This document shows positions 4,105 to 44,077 of a DNA stretch of 64,000 nucleotides, piece by piece (positions within the stretch are counted from its first letter, which is position 1; every line of letters starts with the position of its first letter). The position numbers and the translations under genes are program-made. The stretch is taken from NCBI RefSeq assembly GCF_001194135.2, contig NC_068998.1, positions 24,665,315-24,729,314 of the forward strand, given 5' to 3'. This stretch comes from Octopus bimaculoides (lineage: Eukaryota). The notes beneath the pieces are model-generated. The model made no database searches. It was given only the letters and a program-made list of their open reading frames with translations, and was not told the DNA's origin.

Positions 4105-4935
4105 CTAATCACCTGTCCAGATATCAATCAAAATCTACCACACCAATGGCTACAAGGGAAAGTTTGAAAGGGGAAACAAGGTTTTGTTATTGCAGCGCAA
4201 GATCAGAGCTTACCTACCAGAAACTACCATGCAAACGTCCTTAAAGATGGGTCTGACCCCTCATGCAGAATTTGCGCAAAATTCACAGAAACAATTGAGT
4301 ATGTTGTTTCTGGCTGCCCAGTCCTCGCTGAAAAGGAGTACCTCATAAGACATGACAGTCTAGGGCAGTACATTCACTGGAATGCTTGTAAATACTACAA
4401 AATTAAATCCGATGATAAGTGGTACAGGCACCATCCAGAAGATATAGTAAATGGCGAGGGCGTCACCATCCTTTGGAATTTCCCGCACAGACAGAAAAAT
4501 TGACTTCAACCGACCAGACAACAACAGAGGAACTAATCTGTTAATAGATATGTCTGTCCTACAAGATCAAAATGTCTCAAGAAAGGAATACGAAAAGCCT
4601 TCTCACTATAAATATCTGCAAATTGGAATCACAAAAATGTGGAAGCTTAGTATTATGATAATATCAGTAGTAATTGGTACGTTGATAATGATAAAGAAGG
4701 GAGCTGACAAGTATATTAAAAAACTCCCTGGTAACTCCAATCTTCGTGAACTACACATGATAACCTTAATGGATACAGCCCTTATACTACGGATAGTACT
4801 ATCCATCTAAAAAAGGAATAAATGTGGTGATAAGTTTAGCATGCATAGCAAAAGCGAGTGCCCTGGCTACTCTTAGCCTCTGGAGGATGCCCGGTATTAA
4901 GGCAGCTGAAATAATGTTATAATGAAAGGAAACCA
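4105..4935 (+). mobile_element. 5'-truncated R4/Dong-type (RLE) non-LTR retrotransposon, C-terminal part, frameshifted
   Basis: Reads GFVIAAQDQSLPTRNY...CRICAKFTETIEYVVSGC (CCHC knuckle, H>Y)...RHD...ILWNF..TDRKIDFNRPD...LLIDMSV...KEYEK...ISVVIG...ILRIVLSI*. This is the zinc knuckle plus PD-(D/E)xK restriction-like endonuclease; an (AAT)n run follows. Confidence 0.85.
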
Positions 4936-4937
4936 TA

Positions 4938-4953
4938 AATAATAATAACAATG

Positions 4954-5018
<65 letters not shown>
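4938..5018. repeat. (AAT)n microsatellite at the 3' end of the RLE LINE
   Basis: Directly visible, about 27 units. Confidence 0.95.
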
Positions 5019-7522: not shown

Positions 7523-7650
7523 CGACAAGCTTCTTTCAGTTTCCGTCTACCAAATCCACTCACAAGGCTTTGCTCGGGCCGAAGCTATAGTTGAAGACGT
7601 TTGCCCAAGGTGCTACGCAGTGGGACTGAACCCGGAATCACACAGCCACT
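7523..7650 (-). mobile_element. tRNA-derived SINE, family B (5' part)
   Basis: Reverse complement of GTGGCTGTGTG...GGGTTCAGTCCCACTGCG...CCTTGTGAGTGGATTTGGTAGACGGAAACTGAAAGAAGC. Confidence 0.85.
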
Positions 7651-7654
7651 CCTG

Positions 7655-9218
7655 TATGTATGTCATTTTTTTTAGTTTTATTTCAAAATTTCTTGCCAAT
7701 AGAGAAAGTGTTGATTTCTACTCTAGATCCAAGGCTACTCCATTGGAATTTCAATATCAATAACAGGGTGTTTTTGTTTATATGTATGTATGTATGTATG
7801 TATGTTTGTATGTATGTATGTATGTATGTATGTATGTATTTGTGCCGAATTGGATACTTTGATTTATGTATGTATTCTCATGCATATACTTGCATATCTA
7901 GACATACTGATATATACTTAAATGATAAACCTCTGGGAAATTTTACAGATTTTGACAGTTTCAGTGATGGATTAGATCCGTAGTCTTCGAATTAGCTTTT
8001 TCCTTTCTTGTTTTGAGAAGACTAATTTCTGAAGATTGGTATTTATGCAGTGTGTTACACATCTCAATGCCCCAATAATTACAGGAATAAACATGAACTT
8101 GTAATTTGGATAAAGTAACTGCAGATTTCGTAAGTCTGGAATTCTGGTTTTCTTCGCTAAGTGCGAGGGCTAAGTAATCCGACTCTTTGGGCATGTATTT
8201 AAGGTTATTAGACAAGGAATGCTGCTCAAGGAGCTATGTTCCAAGTCTTGTGACGTTATCAGCCTCATGTATGCAAACTTTGTCAAGGGATGTAGTTTGG
8301 CAGTTGATACAACATTCAAAGGTGGTCTGGATCGTTGTTAAGCATCTGCCGCCTTGTTTTCGTTTTAGGAAGATGCGATCTACGTCACTGTTTATGTGGA
8401 AATTATTTGTGCTTGTTATTATCTTTCAGATTTTCACATCAACGGCTCGAATCTGATCAAGCGTCCACTCAAGCAGCCCAAATGTTGGTATGAACACTGG
8501 CACTGCAAACACATTGTCTTATTGAATGCGGAGAGTTCTGAGGTCCAAATTTTCTTTATTCGGCTGTAATATTCTTTAGTGACACGTGTTTAGTTACCAG
8601 TGTCATTGTAAGATATGTTTTTATCTATCCCTAGACACCTGCAACATGCTTCATCAGATATAAGGAGAACAGTCAAATCATTGATGGGGATGTTGCCAGT
8701 CTGGTTTACAGCTTCCCTCTTTTCACAACCATATAGCAACATTTATCCTGACCGAACCCCAATCCTGTATACTTTGCGAATGTTGTAACCAGGTCAAGGC
8801 AGTTTTTCATCTCGTGCATATTCTTTGCATATAGTTTCAAATCATCCACAAAAAAAACAGGGTATAATTTTGCTATTTATGTTTCCTTGTGAACCAATGA
8901 GATATCCTTCAAACTTCTTTAACATGAATGACAAGGATTTTATACAAAAAGTATAAACAACATCACAGAGAGGTTGTCCCATTGGAAGATGCCTCTATGA
9001 TACTGTATACTCTCAGTGATAATACAGTCACTCTTTTTGTTTAATTTCAAAATGGTGGCCCACGATGTAGTTAGGCCAGCTATGGCTTTGACTATTCTCA
9101 CTGAAACTTCATCAAGCTGAAGGTCTTCTAGCATTCATTTGCCAGAATGAGGATTCAGTACACTTCTGTAAATACTCGTCTCCAATTTCGTTAGCAGATA
9201 TTAATATCGTATCAGGTG

Positions 9219-9250
<32 letters not shown>

Positions 9251-9790
9251 AAGTTGGTAGAAAATACTCTCTCCTGGAGAATACTTCAAAGCCAAAGTTT
9301 TCTTTTTTCTCGGAAAATTTCAGTGTGGGCACATTTCAGCAATATATAATCTTGACTGTTACTACTACAATAATCGTTGCGGTTGTGCCTGCTATTTACC
9401 GTAGTCGTAGTAGGGGACAGTGGTCAGTTACTTTAGCCAATAATGTAGTTTGGCTGGTAGGCAGTATAGAATCTGTTGGAATGTCGCAAGCTGCGAAACC
9501 ACGTGGGGGTCTTATATCATTCAAGTAGCCAGCATCGAGGCTTTGTTTCTTTCTTTTGTAGCAGTTAAATAAATCAGTATTCAATGCATAACTCCTAGAA
9601 AAATGAGTTTTGTAATTACGACTTCTTCTATAACTAGAGGTAGAAAGAATCTGTTTACCTTTTGAGCTGCTGTTTTCTTTCTGTTCCTAGATGATGATGC
9701 AGTTGATGTTGTGTCCAGCCATGTTGTTTGTAGTAACTCTCTGCATGGTAAGTTTCAGTCTAAAACCTCTACCATCATGAATAAAAAGGC
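7655..9790 (-). mobile_element. Internally deleted R4/Dong-like RLE LINE (second family), including its 3' UTR ending in (CATA)n
   Basis: Minus strand has RT motifs RGIFQWDNLS (QGDxLS), FVDDLKLYAK and GLGFGQDKC; C-terminus IPVIIGAL...LQIQSITETVKICK; then a 3' UTR ending GGCAAGAAATTTTGAAATAAAACT...GACATACATAC. Many stops and frameshifts. Confidence 0.8.
9218..9247. repeat. Poly(T) run of about 30 nt inside the LINE remnant
   Basis: Directly visible. Confidence 0.9.
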
Positions 9791-11516
9791 TCTCTCAGTT
9801 AATTCATCTGAAGATTAACCAGTTATTTAACAATACTGATAGTTGCGTCTCCAAAGCTGGAGACAGGATTCAACGTATTTTCGATAAATATTCTCCCACA
9901 CCAAATACGCGATTTGTCGCTTCGAGCTGTAGGTATGTGTGTGTGTGCGCGCGCGAATTATATACGTACATATATGTGTGCGTTGAATACAAATTTGAAT
10001 GGAGAGGTAATGCGATTAAAAAAGATCAGAATAGTATCAATTAGGTTTTTTTAAATAGTAATCGCTTTAAATAATGCGTGAGGAAAAATTACATCGTTTA
10101 TTAGATCTTGAATGATGAATAGATGTTCCTTACAATCTATTACTTCAGTTCCACCTCACGAAAGATTCTTATGTTGGTGGTACATATTTTACAGCACTTT
10201 TTTGGTTGTGTCGTAAAACAAATTAGCATTAAACTAATAATAATTTTGCATTTTCAAATTAGTTACGTCTAAAACAAAAAAATAAAAGTAAGAGTAATTA
10301 GCTGTTGATATATTTCATCCAAGTTAGGTACAATATCGTTTTGTAATTGGTCTGGGAGGTGGTTTACATGGAGCATTGTGGTGTAGAAAGTAATAAAATG
10401 TTACCCGTCTTCAAAAACCAAAATTAAACAAGTGTTTATTAGTGGGACGAGTATGAAATGTCGTTTTTTCTGCTATATTGTAACTTTATCGACTGTTGTT
10501 ATTATTGCCTTTTACAGCACATTTGGAAATGAACCAGCGAATAAATATCTTTTATGGGGTACTTATATACTCTATATCTCACAACAACTCAAACGCTTGA
10601 CTCTCAAACAGCAGAACTGGAGTCATATATGGAACACGTAGTCTGTCAATAGAATAAATTCGTGTTAATTTCTCGTCTAATTAAGATCGAAATATAGTAA
10701 TAGAGAAAATAATAAAGATTATCATGAAGTTCAATATTTAGGACAACTTTATACAAAGCAATGCTTAAAGTAGACGACACAAAATCTTTACAAAAGTCAT
10801 GTAACAGCCATCTGAAACGAACGTAAGTTTGCATTTTCAAGAATTCAGTCGCGTGATTTTCTTTCAAGATCTCAGAGAAATATTCGTTAGCAATAGATTG
10901 TCGTTGGCTTGCTGTGAAAGCTAACCTTTTACTCCAAAGCCATAAATATCTGATCAGTACTTTTATGTTTCACATAAACAGGGTGTGTTGGCGATGGAAC
11001 ACCGGAGTAACTGACTAGCGGTAAAATCTGTGTATCATTTCCGGGAATCTCTGTGCATCAGTGAACACAGGAAACCTCTGTGCACTGTTGAACACTTTCA
11101 ACTCTTCTTCGACTGCCAGTAGACAATATATCTATCTCTCTAATTTTCTTTCTTTCATTCTTTTCCTTTTTCTATATATTATTTGAAAAAAAAAAAGAAA
11201 ACAAAAAACAAAAAACAAAAAGATATATTAATGCCAAAATATCCTAGGAAAAACAAAATAAGAGGTTCAAATTCTACATCGAAATACTAGATGTAGTTAT
11301 CGCAGACCAATATCTTTCTCTTTCTCTCTCAGATATANNNNNNNNNNNNNNNNNNNNNNNNNNNNNNNNNNNNNNNNNNNNNNNNNNNNNNNNNNNNNNN
11401 NNNNNNNNNNNNNNNNNNNNNNNNNNNNNNNNNNNNNNNNNNNNNNNNNNNNNNNNNNNNNNNNNNNNNNNNNNNNNNNNNNNNNNNNNNNNNNNNNNNN
11501 NNNNNNNNNNNNNNNN

Positions 11517-11551
<35 letters not shown>

Positions 11552-12149
11552 TAAATAATATAATACGAGGATAGAAGTTAACATGATTTAAAAGTAGATC
11601 AAGGCGTACGTTTCTGCATCCCTATCAGTTTTAAGTTGCTGGGTTCATATTCTATAGCCTTACGTAAGGTTACTCCTCATAATTATTACAAGCGGGACCC
11701 GTGAATATTTCACAGAGTTAATGGTAAACCTATAGGGCTAAATCTGAAAGCTTTATTCAAAGAAAGAAATTGGAATACGATGATTACTTAATGCAGTGTA
11801 TATACACACTTTATATACTTTATGCACAATTTTATAGACTTAATACACAGCACTCATAAAATAAATATTCACTCTTATTTTTCCATTTTTCCCAATAAAA
11901 AATATATGTATCCTGTGTGTATGATACAGCCTTTAGTTAGATTGCATATATCTGCCACTTAGATAAGCGTGAATATTTCACGGAGTTGCACTTATGCGCA
12001 TGCGGTAAATGATAGGTGATATAAAATCTTAGTTCAATTAAAACAAATACCAATCTTAAAGCGCAGTAAGCAGGCACGCGTTCCGTTAAGAAACGACGAT
12101 CCTTAATCACATGTACCACCGTGTCCCAAACAGGAAAACAATTTATTCT

Positions 12150-12394
12150 TTTATTCTTTTACTTGTTTGAGTCACTTGACTGCACGCATGCTGGAGCACC
12201 ATCTTAAAGGGTCTTAGTCGAAGAAATCCATACCAGGACTTATTCTATCGGTGTCTTTTGCCAAACTGATAATTGATGGCGAGCCTGGGGTACAAACACA
12301 GACACACACAAATATATACAAGCATATATATATATATACATACACACACACACAAACAACACACACCCACCTATATATATAGAAGAAATCCATC

Positions 12395-12454
<60 letters not shown>

Positions 12455-12590
12455 GATGGGTTACTTCCAGTTTCCGTCTACTAAATCCACTCACAAGGAT
12501 TTGGTCGGTCCGAGGCCATAGTAGAGGACACTTGGTCGAGGTGCCAGCAGTGGGACTGAACTCGGCACCATGCGGTTGGGAAGCAAGCCA
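12150..12590 (-). mobile_element. SINE family B, near full length, with internal (CA)/(TA) microsatellite
   Basis: Head (GGTTGGGAAGCAAG on +) at 12575-12590, (TA)n at about 12396-12452, 3' part (GCATGCTGGAGCACC...GTTTGAGTCACTTGACTG) at 12160-12200. Confidence 0.8.
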
Positions 12591-13749: not shown

Positions 13750-13901
13750 TATATATGTATTTTTGTATGTATGTATATACGTATGTCCGTACGCACGTAT
13801 GTATGTATGCATGCAGGCATGTACGTATGTGTGTATGTATGTATGCATGTATGTATGTATGCATGTATGTATGTATGCATGCATGTGTGTATGTATGTAT
13901 G

Positions 13902-13935
<34 letters not shown>

Positions 13936-14160
13936 TGTATGTATGTCACTACTGTATTTTATTTCAAGATTTCTTGTCAATAGAGAGAGAGCCAGTCTCT
14001 AACATAGATCCAAGGCTCCTTCATTGGAATATCAAGATCAACAACGAGGTATTTTTGTTTGTATACTTGTATGTATGCATGCATGCATGTGTGTATGTAT
14101 GTATGTATGTATGTATATACATGCACGAATGAATATGTATGTATGTATGTATGTATTTAT
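13750..14160 (-). mobile_element. 3' terminus of the (CATA)n-associated RLE LINE embedded in (TATG)n arrays
   Basis: 13945-14060 is homologous to 7657-7785 (TTTATTTCAAGATTTCTTG...AGATCCAAGGCTCCTTCATTGGAAT), with (TATG)n on both sides. Confidence 0.75.
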
Positions 14161-14339
14161 AGGTAGATATATGTTTTGGTATACAGTATTGATATTGAGT
14201 TGGAAATCATAAAACAACGTGTGCATTCATATTCAAAACACTCGATATGCACAAACTATATGCACATCTGTGCTTGTGTATATCTAGGGATGAACATATG
14301 CTTATTAATGTACATATTGCACGTATTTATTTATAGATG

Positions 14340-14500
14340 AGGATATATTGTAAGAAGCTTGCTTCTCAACCACATGGTTCTGAATGTAGTCCCACTGCAT
14401 GGCAACTTCTAGTATAGTATCGCCTTGGACAGACCAATGCCTTGTGAATGAGTTTGATAAAGTGATACTTACAGAAAACCGTCGTACAATATATACTTCA
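14340..14500 (+). mobile_element. SINE family B, 5' part
   Basis: GTAAGAAGCTTGCTTCTCAACCACATGGTTC...GTCCCACTGCATGGCAAC...GCCTTGTGAATGAGTTTG. Confidence 0.8.
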
Positions 14501-21665: not shown

Positions 21666-22451
21666 ACACGAGCGCTGCAACTGGATTACAAACAATGCCA
21701 TCGCCAGATTATTGTCCTAAACATGAACAGCGTAGATGTAGGTTTTCAGTCCTGATAGGGACCTAAATGTATTTTCATAAATGTGACAGTGATGGGTGCA
21801 TCATGTAATAAGTGTTTAGTGAGTTTGCCAAACACAACGACACATGCTTTCGTTCCATCATGAACTTTTTCATTGTGTATTTTACCTTTTTCGGCTACAC
21901 CAAGTCAGAGATTGCAACATATTCTAGAGATGTTAAAAATGAAGCGATGCTTGTTTTCTGAAGCCTTTGGAAGTGAGGAAGGGCATTACACAGGAAAAAT
22001 CTCACTCTGTAAACAACCTATACTAAAAAGCACAGTTAAACTACAGTATTGGATGCAAATGACGTCGCAGGTGTAACATTAGCGTTTTTTTCTTACTAGA
22101 GAAATGTCTAAACAAAGACTAGGGGTATCTTACTCCCAGCTATCAGTTGGTTTTGACATTACTGCATTCATCTGTCCTTGACAGGTTCTGTTTTCCGCCC
22201 TGCAGGATGTCCGAAGAAAACTACTCACCTTACCAGTTAGACTTGATTAGGATACTGGTTTAGCCAGTGACAGGTGGGCCATGAAAAAAGTTGTGCGTTA
22301 TATGTTACAAGTAGCACAAAGATCAATCTGTTCATACACGCATACATACATACATACATACATACATACATACATGCATGCATGCATGCATACATACATA
22401 TATAAATACATACGTATTTAATACATACATACATACATACATACATACATG

Positions 22452-22850
22452 CATAGTAGTTATTAAGGGCACTAAGATATGTAACACACTGCCTAAATAC
22501 CAATTTAAGAAATTAGGTTTCTCAAAACCAGAAAGGAGTAAACCGATTCAAAGACTACAGATTCAATGCATCACTGGTACTGTGAAAATCTGTAAAACTT
22601 TCCAGAAGTTTATCATTTAAATATATATGAGCATCTCTAGATATGCAACTACATGCAGGAGAATACATACGTAAAATAAAACATAAAAATATGCACATAT
22701 ACATACATATATGCATACAAATATACGAACATAAATGCCCTGTTTGTGATGTTGAAATTCCAATGAAGGGGAATAGGATCTAGGTTAAAAATCCTCTCTT
22801 TCTCTATTGGCAAGAAATCTTGAAATAAAACTGAATAATAACATACATAC
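22452..22850 (+). mobile_element. 5'-truncated copy of the (CATA)n-associated RLE LINE (C-terminal coding end plus 3' UTR)
   Basis: Encodes ...RLQIQCITGTVKICKTFQKFII*, homologous to the reverse complement of 7935-8090. It continues through the same 3' UTR to GAAATAAAACTGAATAATAACATACATAC and starts directly after a (CATA)n array. Confidence 0.8.
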
Positions 22851-24577
22851 AAATATAGAAACAAACATACACACACAGAAATATATGCATATGTGTATGT
22901 GCGTGTATGTGCATTTGTACACATCTGTACACNNNNNNNNNNNNNNNNNNNNNNNNNNNNNNNNNNNNNNNNNNNNNNNNNNNNNNNNNNNNTATATATA
23001 TATATATATGTATGTATATACATGTGTGTGTGTGCATAGATATACACACACATAGATTCATACATGCATCTTTATATATATTTACATGTATGTATTCTTG
23101 CATATGTACAACAATCTAACATATCTCAGTTTTTTATATTTATGTAATTACACGTTAGTGTAGAGTTTTTTTTTTAAATTATCATTCACAGACACAAATG
23201 CTTACACGATATTTAACGAAATATATAAACAGAAATTACAAAATATTTCCCAGTTATTAAACTACACGAAAATTATTTCTCTTCATAGCTAAGATTATTT
23301 CTCTAATAATAGTTTTATTGCTTTTCTTCATGACTTTAATCATTTTGTTGTGACTTCAAATTATACTTGACAAACTCAATATTATGCATGAAGCGGCGGG
23401 CAAGAAAACAAATATTAATAATAGAAGTGGCGATGAAGTGAAAACGTTATTTATTTAATATTTATGGAAGGAAAATATATTATAAATATAGGCCTCAACT
23501 AAAAGAAGAGAAAAACATAATTATAATGTAATACTTGTTAACAGTTGGAGTTGGAGATGGTATGAATGCCAAATGAATTGGTCTTATTTTCCTTGTATCT
23601 TTCACTGTTAGTGTAGTCCTATATTCTTTGTCGTAATAGTGTCCTAGATATGACTTTAGGCTACATCTGCTGTGGACCGCTGATTCGGGGATTCCAGGGT
23701 TTTGACGAGTATGGGATCACCTTTTAGCCACTACTTCCTATCAAATCTACTCTGACCCAGAGATAGAAGCACCCATCAAAGTCTTAGTATGGATTCATGT
23801 GCATATTAGTGAAGACTGAATCCAGCGGACACCACGGGAAAAAAACCGTCATAGGCCAACGGTGGGAAAATTCGCTGCAACAAGGCATTGTAGGATACAA
23901 AGGAAACATGAGGCGAGTAAGATATCTTGGCCAGGCACTGCATTCGTCTCCATCCTCAGTCGTCTTGATTTGGTTTTGCCACCGGATTGAAGATGGTCAC
24001 TGATATGAGAGTGAACATAATACAAAGCCATCACGCAAGTAATCAGTCATCTCTGACGATGACTGGATTGTTCGCGTCGCACCGACGTACGAACATAGTA
24101 AAAGTTAATCTTTTACACTTCTGTTCTCTTACAACTCTCACTTTTACCAGTCTTTTTTTCTAACATCTGTTACCCATATACCCTTCTACTTTCCAAATTC
24201 TAGCTATTGGTGCTCTCATTCATTTCTATATTATAGTAGGACAGCTTCCAAACTTTTAAACTTCTGCATTTTATATTTTATCAATTACTTATTTTCATAT
24301 ACCATTCAAAACTACAATAATGCACAACAGCCATTGAAAACAGAGAGGTCATTCATGTCCATTATGTAAAGGGAAATGATAGAATATATCCGATATATGT
24401 CGCTAAGAAGTTCAATTTTGATCAGTATGGTTATACGTTTGTGCTTCATATTGAGTAATTCTCTTCTATTGAATTAACCAGCGTGTTGACGGAAATTGTG
24501 CGGGAGCCTGCATGGGTATGCATATACATGTAATATATTGCACTCATACATATACATATGTATACGTGCATGCATAT

Positions 24578-24780
24578 ATGTCATTATTCAGTTTATTTTA
24601 AGATTTCTTGCCAATAAAGAAAGAACCTAGATCCAAGGCTCCTTCATTGGAATTTCAACATCAACAACAGGGTGATTTTGCATGTATGTATGTATGTATG
24701 TATGTATGTATATATGCATGTATGTATGTATGTATGTATGTATGTATGTTTTTATATATATATATGTATGTATGTATTTG
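24578..24780 (-). mobile_element. 3' terminus of the (CATA)n-associated RLE LINE
   Basis: GTCATTATTCAGTTTATTTTAAGATTTCTTGCCAATA...AGATCCAAGGCTCCTTCATTGGAATTTCAACATCAACAACAGGG, with TATG/CATA repeats on both sides. Confidence 0.75.
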
Positions 24781-24895
24781 ATATTTAGCAGAAGTAACAG
24801 AATGACTCAAGGTCCGAGACTTTTGTGCCAACGCACGAAGCTCCCCGATCTTAAGCTACTCTGTTATTTCTGCTAAATATTGATACAAATATCCG

Positions 24896-34714: not shown

Positions 34715-35820
34715 TTATAAGCATACTCGTATAATGTGAGCATCTATCTTTCAGGCCCGTATAGAAGAACAGACTCCCTGTTGCCAGACACAACTTGACT
34801 TTCAATTTCCTTTGAACTCCGTACCTTTCTCAATTCATACCATGTGCCCCAGGCAAGAGTTTCCTTGCTACGATGTATTTTTCAGTACTTTATACCCACG
34901 CACCAAGGTATTTGAAATTTTCAACTAACTTGAGCGATTTACCCTCTCTCACTTTCACTAACACAGGCATTTCATGGTTGAATACTTGCAGCTGTGTTTC
35001 TTTGCGTTACAGTACAGTCCTACCTTCCCCCCGGTTCCTGCTCTAATCTACTCAGCACCTCCTGTGCCTGATCTGCACCTGATCTGTGCCTGAATTTTAG
35101 TAGTTTGCCTGCAAATTCAAGGATGATGTCTAAATCACATATTTTTATTACTTCTGGTGGGATGTTGTCATGACCAGTTTGTTTTGCTTCTTTCAGGTTA
35201 CTTGTAACCCTTTCTATTTCTTGTTTTGTGAAGTCTCCATTCTCGATTTGTAAATCGTCAAGTATCTTTGCTAATTCTTCATTTTCTGTTTCACTGTCAA
35301 CTTCTGGATCCTTCTCAAGTAAGATGTAGAAATGAGTATACCATTTCTTGATTCTCTCGTCCTTTGATTTCCTTTTGAGGATTCCCTGCGTTATAGCTTT
35401 GCGACCAGTTATGGAGTTAATCAAACTCCAGCTTTCTCCGTGCCTACTCTTTGCGTCTGTATTTCCGACCGGGGAGACATTTCATTCAGTCCCTCTTCAT
35501 GCATCTCTTGGTACACATGTTTTAGACCCTCTTTCTTTCTTTGTAAAGTTTGTTTAGTATCGTTGTTGGCAACTTTTTGATAGTTGCTGAATGCCTCTTG
35601 TACTTCACTGCGTGCTTTTTCTACCCTGGGATCATCAGTTAACTTTCTCCGTTTCATCCTCTTCTTTATCGGTATCAGTTTTGTTGCCGCTTCTTCATTT
35701 GATTGCACAAACTTGCAATATTTCACTATAACAATATCCTTGTTGTTCATGTCTCAGTGTTCCCAATTAAAATCTGATAAGACAAGTAAAAGATTTTACA
35801 ATCTGAGTGACTTTGTAATA
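34715..35820 (-). mobile_element. RTE-type LINE, inverted 5' segment (post-endonuclease linker, most of RT deleted, RT thumb)
   Basis: Reads FVQSNEEAATKLIP...INSITGRK...KQTGHDNIPPEVIK...IILEFAGKLL joined to QAQEVLSRLEQE...ENFKYLGAWV...ESVLLYG. Confidence 0.85.
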
Positions 35821-43100: not shown

Positions 43101-44077
43101 GTAGAAAAGGCTGGGTTTACATTTAAAGTTTGTCAAATAGTCTATTTCTTTTTTTGTTAGGTCTTTTCCGTGGGTTTGGATTGTTGAAAAGAGGTTTTTC
43201 ATTATTTTTGTTGACATTTTGGTAGTGTTTTTCATTTTTAAGTATAGATACTAATAGTTTTTTTTTGTAGTAAAATGTGTCCATTACCACTACTAAACTT
43301 CCTTTGTCCGCTTCTTTGATTGTTATTTCCACATTGTTTCGTAGTTCAGCTACTTCTTTCCATTGGGTGGAGCTGAAATTTGAAGTAATTCTTTGTTTGT
43401 ACAGGGTAGGGAGAATCATCGGCGTTGAGTTTATCCAACGCACGTAAATTCCTGCTTTGTTTGCATATTTAATCATATTCCAGAAAGCAAATTTTCTGTT
43501 ATGAAGGTTTGTGTTCCACGAATTATCTATTTTCCTTTTAATTAGATAAGTGAGTGATTGTACGGGGTCGTAACGGGTTTCATTTAGTATGGGTTGGTTT
43601 CTGTCCAGTTTGTTTATGAAAATTGAGCTTAGCGTTGTGCATAAGGTGTTTAAATCTTTACTGCCTTCTGGACCTGAGCGCAAGTAAGACTGAATAAAGA
43701 AGCCTCGTTTATCCAAAAATATAAACCAGAATTAAATATGAACCCATTTTAATAATAAACGACTTACTCCATCTAATGGAATATGTAAGCCAGATTAAAT
43801 AGGGACCACACACACAAAACAAAAACAAAAAATAAAAATTACAGATTTACCTCCCCTTTACTGCAAAATAAATGAGTCAACAATTATCTCCCCTTGCAAT
43901 ATTTTTTTTCCCTAGCAATTTATCTCTTTCAACTCTCTCTGCGAAACCAGTCCTTACTTCAATTGTGTTGAAAGAACAAAACCTTATTTTGTACAAAATT
44001 GTATAATAGCTTTATTATCATGGTTCTAATATACTCTTAAATCCTGTAAAACAAATCTTCTGTGTTTTTTCATCTTT
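40200..44077 (-). mobile_element. Penelope-like element: RT plus GIY-YIG (frameshifted), 3' region, and an inverted 3' copy at its 5' end
   Basis: Reads IKEADKGSLVVVMD, FYGLPKIK, YRQKSGIGMGTRAAP, LPFLDILI, and the GIY-YIG-like YAIRCSGYHRNYIGSTG. 43666-44077 is an inverted copy of 41114-41522. Confidence 0.9.
40372..40421 (-). ncRNA. Minimal type-I hammerhead ribozyme-like motif downstream of the Penelope ORF
   Basis: Minus strand reads AUCU-CCGAUGA-AGGGAUAU-AAUAA-AUAUCCUG-GAAAC-AGCU-GUA-AGAC. Core has U4>C; stem III is the palindrome ACAGCUGU. Confidence 0.7.

Follow-up and report, generated by a model that had tools for sequence, protein, structure and literature searches.

Four fossil retrotransposon copies in a 64,000-nucleotide stretch of the Octopus bimaculoides genome (RefSeq assembly GCF_001194135.2, contig NC_068998.1, positions 24,665,315 to 24,729,314 of the forward strand; the whole stretch is hereafter called the window) end in repeats of the tetranucleotide CATA. 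The question raised by this locus is whether (CATA)n is only the 3' tail of these long interspersed nuclear elements (LINEs) or also the site into which they insert. An initial annotation of the window had proposed the latter and had assigned the copies to a LINE family with a restriction-like endonuclease (RLE). Our analysis demonstrates that (CATA)n is the fixed 3' tail of the family, and we moderately favor the view that the family follows a strategy like that of Dong elements, in which the repeat serves as insertion target as well as tail. Targeting is likely, judging from one clean 5' junction in octopus and, by analogy, from relatives embedded in CATA arrays, and we infer that the octopus family itself is target-specific.

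Four fossil copies with a common 3' unit and a CATA tail

Self-comparison and a profile search detected exactly four copies of one repeat family in the window, which has an A+T content of ~65%, many N gaps and plentiful simple repeats, and whose repeats show ~80% identity to Octopus sinensis and O. bimaculoides loci. A conserved 3' unit of ~105 bp, which reads ACCCTGTTGTTGATGTTGAAATTCCAATGAAGG...TATTGGCAAGAAATCTTGAAATAAAACTGAATAATGA in element sense, closes every copy and is directly followed by CATA-phase repeats. Copy A (7663-~9665, minus strand), the longest in the window, was delimited by its match to RVT_1, by tblastn to relatives and by alignment with an O. sinensis copy (locus L001, 8368-11473; 80% DNA identity) that ends like the window copies. 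It comprises the 3' unit (7663-7768), an internal (CATA)n (~7777-7872), a stop codon (7918-7920) and, in its upstream part, a frameshifted reverse transcriptase (RT) reaching as far as the start of the open reading frame (ORF) at ~9649. Copy B (13946-~14340, minus strand; nhmmer E=6e-33, local alignment z~3.5) consists of the 3' unit (13946-14057), the internal (CATA)n (~14058-14160), a diverged stretch and, at 14276-14338, a weak match to the end of the ORF, and copy C (24581-24777, minus strand; nhmmer E=3e-28) of the 3' unit (24581-24680) and the internal (CATA)n (24680-24777). The 5'-truncated copy D (22456-22841, plus strand) aligns to copy A 8082-7653 with 76-81% identity; the C-terminal remnant of its ORF (22456-22620), which tblastn matched to the C-terminus of relatives, closes with the stop codon TAA at 22618-22620 and is followed by a degenerate internal (CATA)n (~22650-22735) and the 3' unit (22736-22841).

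The same terminal base followed by a CATA repeat in the same orientation was found at the 3' end in five of five octopus copies (A to D, and L001 at 11473), so that the repeat belongs to the 3' end of the element and is not a chance neighbor; that it is the fixed tail of the family is certain. The four 3' ends that had been placed against same-orientation CATA at 7657, 13945, 22845 and 24578 in the initial annotation are all present within a few bases of these positions. The number of repeat units differs among copies, with ~49 CATA-phase units (TATG on the plus strand) behind copy B (13750-13945; TRF row 13750-13946), a degenerate CATA/CATG/TATA stretch behind copy C (~24505-24580) and, behind copy D (22842-22932), CATACATACA and then a degenerate repeat of CA/CATA type up to an N gap at 22933. 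Behind copy A the tail (7653-7662, CATACATACA) comprises just 2.5 units and is directly followed by the head of a short interspersed nuclear element (SINE). Copies of the family are in contact with about half of the CATA-array bases of the window, and the family therefore contributes to the spread of the repeat.

Apart from its tail, every copy has a second (CATA)n inside the element. This array of ~80-100 bp, not mentioned in the initial annotation, separates the 3' unit from the C-terminal part of the ORF with its stop codon (copy D 22456-22620; copy A 8082-7918). We conjecture that the internal array and the 3' unit originated from the ancestral insertion of a short copy into the master element's own tail. 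Within the 3' unit two conserved arms, CCAATGAAGG and CTCTATTGG, could pair around a loop whose sequence varies among copies A to D and L001 and is in part deleted; as to a conserved RNA stem in this unit, there was no covariation and the predicted energy was weak. A search of six loci against Rfam returned no 5' ribozyme and no 3' RNA family at gathering thresholds, and in the window Rfam gave only sub-threshold matches of microRNA models, located on the microsatellites themselves.

Other short repeats adjoin the copies. A SINE-like repeat with a tRNA-type, B-box-like motif (GGTTCAGTCCCAC) occurs twice, at 7523-7652 (minus strand), where it adjoins the short tail of copy A in the same orientation and is followed by an N gap, and at 14350-14480 (plus strand), where it adjoins the 5' end of copy B. 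An element of ~100 bp resembling a miniature inverted-repeat transposable element (MITE; 24780-24880), with terminal inverted repeats of ~21 bp (GATATTTAGCAGAAGTAACAG / CTGTTATTTCTGCTAAATAT), abuts copy C precisely at its 5' edge.

The family is an RLE-type LINE of the R2 group

Sequence motifs and predicted fold identify the family as an RLE-type LINE of the R2 group, with a presumptive single ORF encoding an RT, a CCHC knuckle and a C-terminal PD-(D/E)XK nuclease, in agreement with the class proposed in the initial annotation. Since copy A is degenerate, its match to Pfam RVT_1 (E=2.7e-5) falls under the curated cut-off; the corresponding match in a 1171-aa single-ORF relative at L004 15961-19476 has an E of 3.6e-24. 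In this relative Pfam recognized only RVT_1 and, weakly, zf-RVT, no apurinic-like endonuclease (APE) domain and, in the N-terminal 294 aa, no named DNA-binding family, neither zinc-finger nor Myb. The RLE domain has no named Pfam family. In intact homologues of the copy A translation the RT is accompanied by a knuckle of the form CRLC..H....C, by the nuclease signature KPD-(14)-D...K and by a distinctive C-terminal end, IPVVLGATG...LGT.KIVKSF. The CCHC/nuclease region is deleted from the window copies, and copy A has in addition lost ~1 kb of the N-terminal part of the RT. The evidence for CCHC and RLE consequently comes from the intact relatives and two further octopus copies: L001, which retains the CCHC motif CDDRCRLCGVHTEVIIGSC and KHNRPDI and is collinear with the ORF layout of the 1171-aa relative from residue 4 on, and L009, an O. 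bimaculoides fragment of the family that has lost its 3' end and retains KHNKPDI.

Comparison of an intact homologue with the PDB by phmmer gave best matches that were all R2 proteins. Likewise, an AlphaFold model of the relative P0010, in which the C-terminal domain was predicted with confidence (pLDDT ~90), returned R2 proteins as its top seven Foldseek matches, which extended over ~640-660 columns, nearly the full length, at 17-20% identity in the structural alignment; cap-snatching PD-(D/E)XK nucleases appeared as weak partial matches. According to repeat-annotation papers that are silent on targets, octopus has abundant Dong-R4 LINEs that were active recently (PMC13282606, PMC8967140). 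Dong-R4 elements as such have thus been catalogued in octopus, and the Dong-R4 label, which for the present family is taken from these papers, is a lead rather than a phylogenetic placement.

The window copies are broken and only ~77-82% identical to each other, and hence old and without present-day activity; the family is old and dead. At a divergence of ~20%, the copies were probably inserted before the octopus species separated. An A-run inside copy A has grown to A28 (9219-9246) and was considered as the tail of another retroposon marking the 5' end of the copy; this was rejected, as L001 has AAACAAA at this position and homology runs on at both sides. A protein search found only two annotated octopus proteins of the family (P0018, leading to L001, and P0034, leading to L009). 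The NCBI gene models LOC115227337 (O. sinensis, L001 10001-11707) and LOC106878562 (O. bimaculoides, L009 10001-10837) are pieces of this dead LINE family, and the L009 fragment is located directly downstream of C2H2 zinc-finger-like repeats (9500-9900). A scan of JGI metagenomes yielded no match to the octopus 3' unit, and no recognizable host gene was found in the window as an anchor for an orthologous locus.

Copy D begins directly behind a CATA array

The clearest 5' junction in octopus is that of copy D. Its first base, 22456, corresponds to copy A 8082, from which copy A runs on into coding sequence, and it directly follows a (CATA)31 array (22333-22455, plus strand; TRF period 4, 31 copies) in the same orientation. 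Copy D is therefore truly 5'-truncated, and the truncation point that had been put at about 22452 behind (CATA)n is real, if shifted by a few bases. No 3' unit of the family was found upstream of (CATA)31 at 22333-22455, so that the array is not the tail of another copy; it is a candidate remnant of the upstream half of a target array. At least two CATA units ending within 15 bp upstream are found at ~2% of positions per strand in the octopus sequence analyzed, and given this background the junction is unlikely to have arisen by chance (p~0.02), even if it represents a single case.

Relatives in marine assemblies are embedded in CATA and CTTA arrays

Relatives, that is, contigs with homologous proteins from ENA and TARA marine eukaryote assemblies, fall into a CATA cluster (loci L004, L005, L006, L008 and L012) and a CTTA cluster (L002, L010 and L011). 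A CATA tail is present in all CATA-cluster relatives with a readable 3' end, and L004, L005, L006 and L008 contain elements of several diverged lineages that all have a CATA end and are arranged head to tail. Moreover, 5' ends, truncated or full-length, lie no more than a few bases from a CATA array of the same strand in L004 (7658, 11708, 12178, 15600 and 19870), and further ones at such arrays in L005 (~5880), L006 (9307 and 11420) and L008 (5113), with junctions lacking CATA at L005 ~9745 and L006 ~2910. Same-strand CATA was thus found at 10 of the 12 readable 5' junctions, or 9 of 12 if only the nine recorded coordinates are conservatively counted; against a background of 3.3%, which is inflated by the elements' own tails, these counts correspond to P ~8e-14 and ~8e-12, respectively. 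At several of these junctions, unrelated sequence or a SINE-like element stands in front of the upstream array, and the pattern is therefore not explained by template jumping between LINE RNAs.

Head-to-tail copies with the repeat between them occur in L002, L004, L005, L006 and L010, and L002, L010 and L011 present the same picture with (CTTA)n, for example in the order 3' end, (CTTA)51, truncated copy, (CTTA)65, full-length copy, (CTTG)24. In a rough neighbor-joining tree of RT sequences the CTTA-type and CATA-type elements form separate clusters, and the octopus family stands alone on a long branch. The tail motif tracks this tree: a CATA tail predicted for P0010 was subsequently found as CATACATACATA ~150 nt past the stop codon. 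The octopus 3' unit has no match in any of the relatives' contigs, and L002 to L008 gave only a few short matches of 67-74% to octopus DNA, in coding regions. We tentatively suggest, at somewhat less than even confidence, a widespread and undescribed marine-invertebrate lineage of tetranucleotide-specific R2-like LINEs, whose sister groups switched between (CATA)n and (CTTA)n targets together with their RNA tails.

Three further observations were made in these contigs. A SINE-like non-coding repeat ending in ...AACTGGGTCTTGGCGGTCCCGAATCT(CATA)n is present in L004 (7400-7533, 14350-14805 and 20600-20819) and L005 (11726-11823 and ~12100-12530); full and 5'-truncated copies of it also start right after CATA arrays, and it may be a non-autonomous partner of the CATA-type LINEs. 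In L005 5727-5880, upstream of a full-length relative, the first 7-11 bases of the element (AACCAAC / AACCAAATC) recur four to five times with a few CATA units in between, conceivably as a result of unequal exchange or of 5'-end events that were aborted repeatedly. In L004 a compound array (7534-7657) that precedes a full-length CATA-type element joins (CATA)25 directly to (CTTA)6, the motifs of both sister groups.

Evidence against targeting and alternative explanations

A number of observations weigh against (CATA)n as the target of the octopus family. Copy A and L001, both near full length, part in homology exactly at the ORF start, and immediately upstream they have no sequence in common and no CATA. 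The nearest simple repeats lie ~245-275 bp further upstream (degenerate CA/TA at window 9932-9985 for copy A, (TA)n at ~8085-8110 of L001), and a comparison of the sequences preceding the ORF start gave no significant alignment that would point to a shared 5' untranslated region (UTR). As 5' UTRs of the relatives span 15 to ~400 nt, copy A and L001 may nevertheless have 5' UTRs that are not shared, which is possible but unproven. The 5' end of L009 is also without CATA (its 3' end being missing as well), and no head-to-tail pair of the octopus family occurs in ~107 kb of octopus DNA (the window, L001 and L009). The remaining 5' ends are uninformative: that of copy B is unreadable, hidden by the plus-strand SINE (14350-14480), (AC)28 and a gap, and copy C stops where its own internal array begins on the 5' side, beside the MITE, beyond which no LINE homology was found, an arrangement compatible with a CATA target. 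Truncation inside the internal array, considered for both, was rejected for copy B, which reaches ~14340, and copy C stays ambiguous. Furthermore, the 2.5 units behind copy A are paralleled in the relatives L012 and L006 copy c, where 2.5-3 units are followed by unrelated sequence. Finally, the RT of the relatives is only ~40-45% identical to that of the octopus family, which occupies its own long branch, and the behavior of the relatives is thus an analogy, not a measurement on the octopus family. With a single clean CATA 5' junction (copy D), the octopus sample is too small and too mixed to decide targeting, which is not proven by it; of the proposal in the initial annotation that 5' junctions lie in CATA arrays, the part upheld is that concerning copy D and the relatives, whereas copy A, L001 and L009 do not conform.

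Templated or slippage-made 3' tails are a feature of many CR1, L2, RTE and I elements. If the octopus repeat were a tail of this kind only, insertion would be undirected and (CATA)31 before copy D a coincidence or the result of later array growth. The absence of CATA where homology stops in copy A, L001 and L009, the 2.5-unit tail of copy A and the single clean positive junction in octopus all agree with this explanation, but it has to accept the low chance probability of the copy D junction, it cannot yield the CATA junctions of the relatives and their head-to-tail arrays of mixed diverged lineages, and most RLE-type clades are target-specific (PMC4640811). We therefore regard it as unlikely, albeit the most serious of the alternatives.

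A bias driven by pairing would differ less from a CATA target. Here nicking would be loose and priming would occur mainly where the nicked DNA pairs with (CAUA)n, so that CATA arrays, even very short ones, would be enriched at insertion sites and yet not required. The 2.5-3 units followed by unrelated DNA in copy A, L012 and L006 copy c, the existence of some junctions without CATA and the constant identity of tail motif and flanking array motif, for CATA and CTTA alike, would fit such a bias; it is, however, a variant of CATA targeting rather than a contradiction of it, and as a separate explanation we consider it rather improbable.

Lastly, the CATA before truncated copies might be the tail of a second RNA acquired by template jumping, which is established in vitro for R2-type RT, or a product of unequal array exchange, in place of a pre-existing target; the frequent position of relatives directly behind another copy's tail and the odd AACCAAC+CATA repeats at the 5' end of L005 copy b would be in line with this, but the arrays before copy D, L006 copy b and L008 have no element 3' unit in front, and adjacent L004 copies differ in their terminal and 3' UTR sequences, which makes it very improbable.

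Proposed insertion mechanism

In the reading that we favor, with (CATA)n as both target and tail, the transcript would end with the conserved ~105-nt 3' unit and (CAUA)n, a second (CAUA)n being located between the stop codon and this unit. The RLE would nick the bottom strand within a genomic (CATA)n.(TATG)n array, and the freed (TATG)n 3' end would pair with the (CAUA)n tail of the RNA and prime reverse transcription, which when incomplete would give rise to 5'-truncated copies. The upstream part of the array would be left untouched at the 5' junction, and the tail would fuse with the downstream part. Each new tail would be a new target, with arrays seeding more insertions and the family thereby spreading CATA arrays. 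For Dong-type elements this is the accepted mode of insertion. The specificity would be seated either in the nuclease and DNA-binding domain or solely in the pairing of tail and target; since some copies have only 2.5-3 units after the 3' end, a short stretch of CATA may suffice, or it may be tail pairing and not the nuclease that imposes the requirement.

Other retroelements in the window

The window also contains a fragment of a second, different RLE-type LINE (4120-5018, plus strand) with a CCHC motif and an RPD...D nuclease region, detected by tblastn to relatives (residues ~390-640). The ORF of this element (4120-4937) ends at ~4810 and its 3' end lies at ~4937, followed by (AAT)27, literally a Dong-like (TAA)n tail, which makes it a closer literal analogue of Dong than the CATA family; on the 5' side the fragment meets (TA)n and an N gap. 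Two ORFs at 43123-43716 (minus strand, 197 aa) and 35020-35424 (minus strand, 134 aa) resemble pieces of other retroelements, and one of them has a ...EADKGSLVVVMD... motif.

Relation to known microsatellite-specific LINEs

Published microsatellite-specific LINEs comprise Dong with (TAA)n, including a snail member, Kibi with (TC)n, Koshi with (TTC)n, Mino with (AC)n, Togen with (TG)n, a leech HERO family and Waldo with (ACAY)n (PMC3812793, PMC4640811). In the Dong elements of the R4/Dong clade, Dong of Bombyx mori, DongAg and DongBg of the mollusc Biomphalaria glabrata, tail and flanking target are one microsatellite (PMC3812793), as would be the case in the octopus family, which differs from the (TAA)n-specific Dong group in its tetranucleotide CATA and its extra internal array in the 3' UTR. 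Kibi, Koshi, Mino, Togen and the leech HERO family likewise use a simple-repeat target identical to their own tail, with other motifs and mostly in other clades (PMC3812793, PMC4640811). The intact relatives of the octopus family share architecture and fold (RT, CCHC, RLE) with the 28S rDNA-specific R2, presumably together with target-primed reverse transcription; in contrast to R2, the target here would be a microsatellite, the identity is 17-20% and no N-terminal zinc-finger/Myb Pfam domain was recognized in the relative.

The claim that a CATA target had not been described needs qualification, as the (ACAY)n target of the Waldo elements (WaldoAg1/2 and WaldoFs1, R1 clade) overlaps with it, ACAT being the same repeat as CATA (PMC3812793). 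Waldo elements are, however, APE-type and found in insects, whereas the octopus family has a predicted C-terminal RLE, with no APE domain in the relative and best structural matches to R2. The family is hence not a member of Waldo, and any shared target would be convergent. For an RLE/Dong-like LINE, a search confined to the full-text literature found no description of a CATA or CTTA target. What would be new is the CATA target motif within the known class of microsatellite-specific RLE LINEs, the kind of element itself being known.

If CATA targeting is true, it would add a new target to this small class, together with target switching between CATA and CTTA within one lineage, and would provide a natural series for learning how the target choice of RLE LINEs is reprogrammed. 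This bears on the choice of DNA by R2-type proteins, which are now used for site-specific gene insertion. In octopus, such targeting would explain part of the CATA-repeat load and also the flanks that many CATA arrays have in common, a nuisance for marker design and assembly, and it would assign a behavior to part of the abundant Dong-R4 fraction of the octopus genome.

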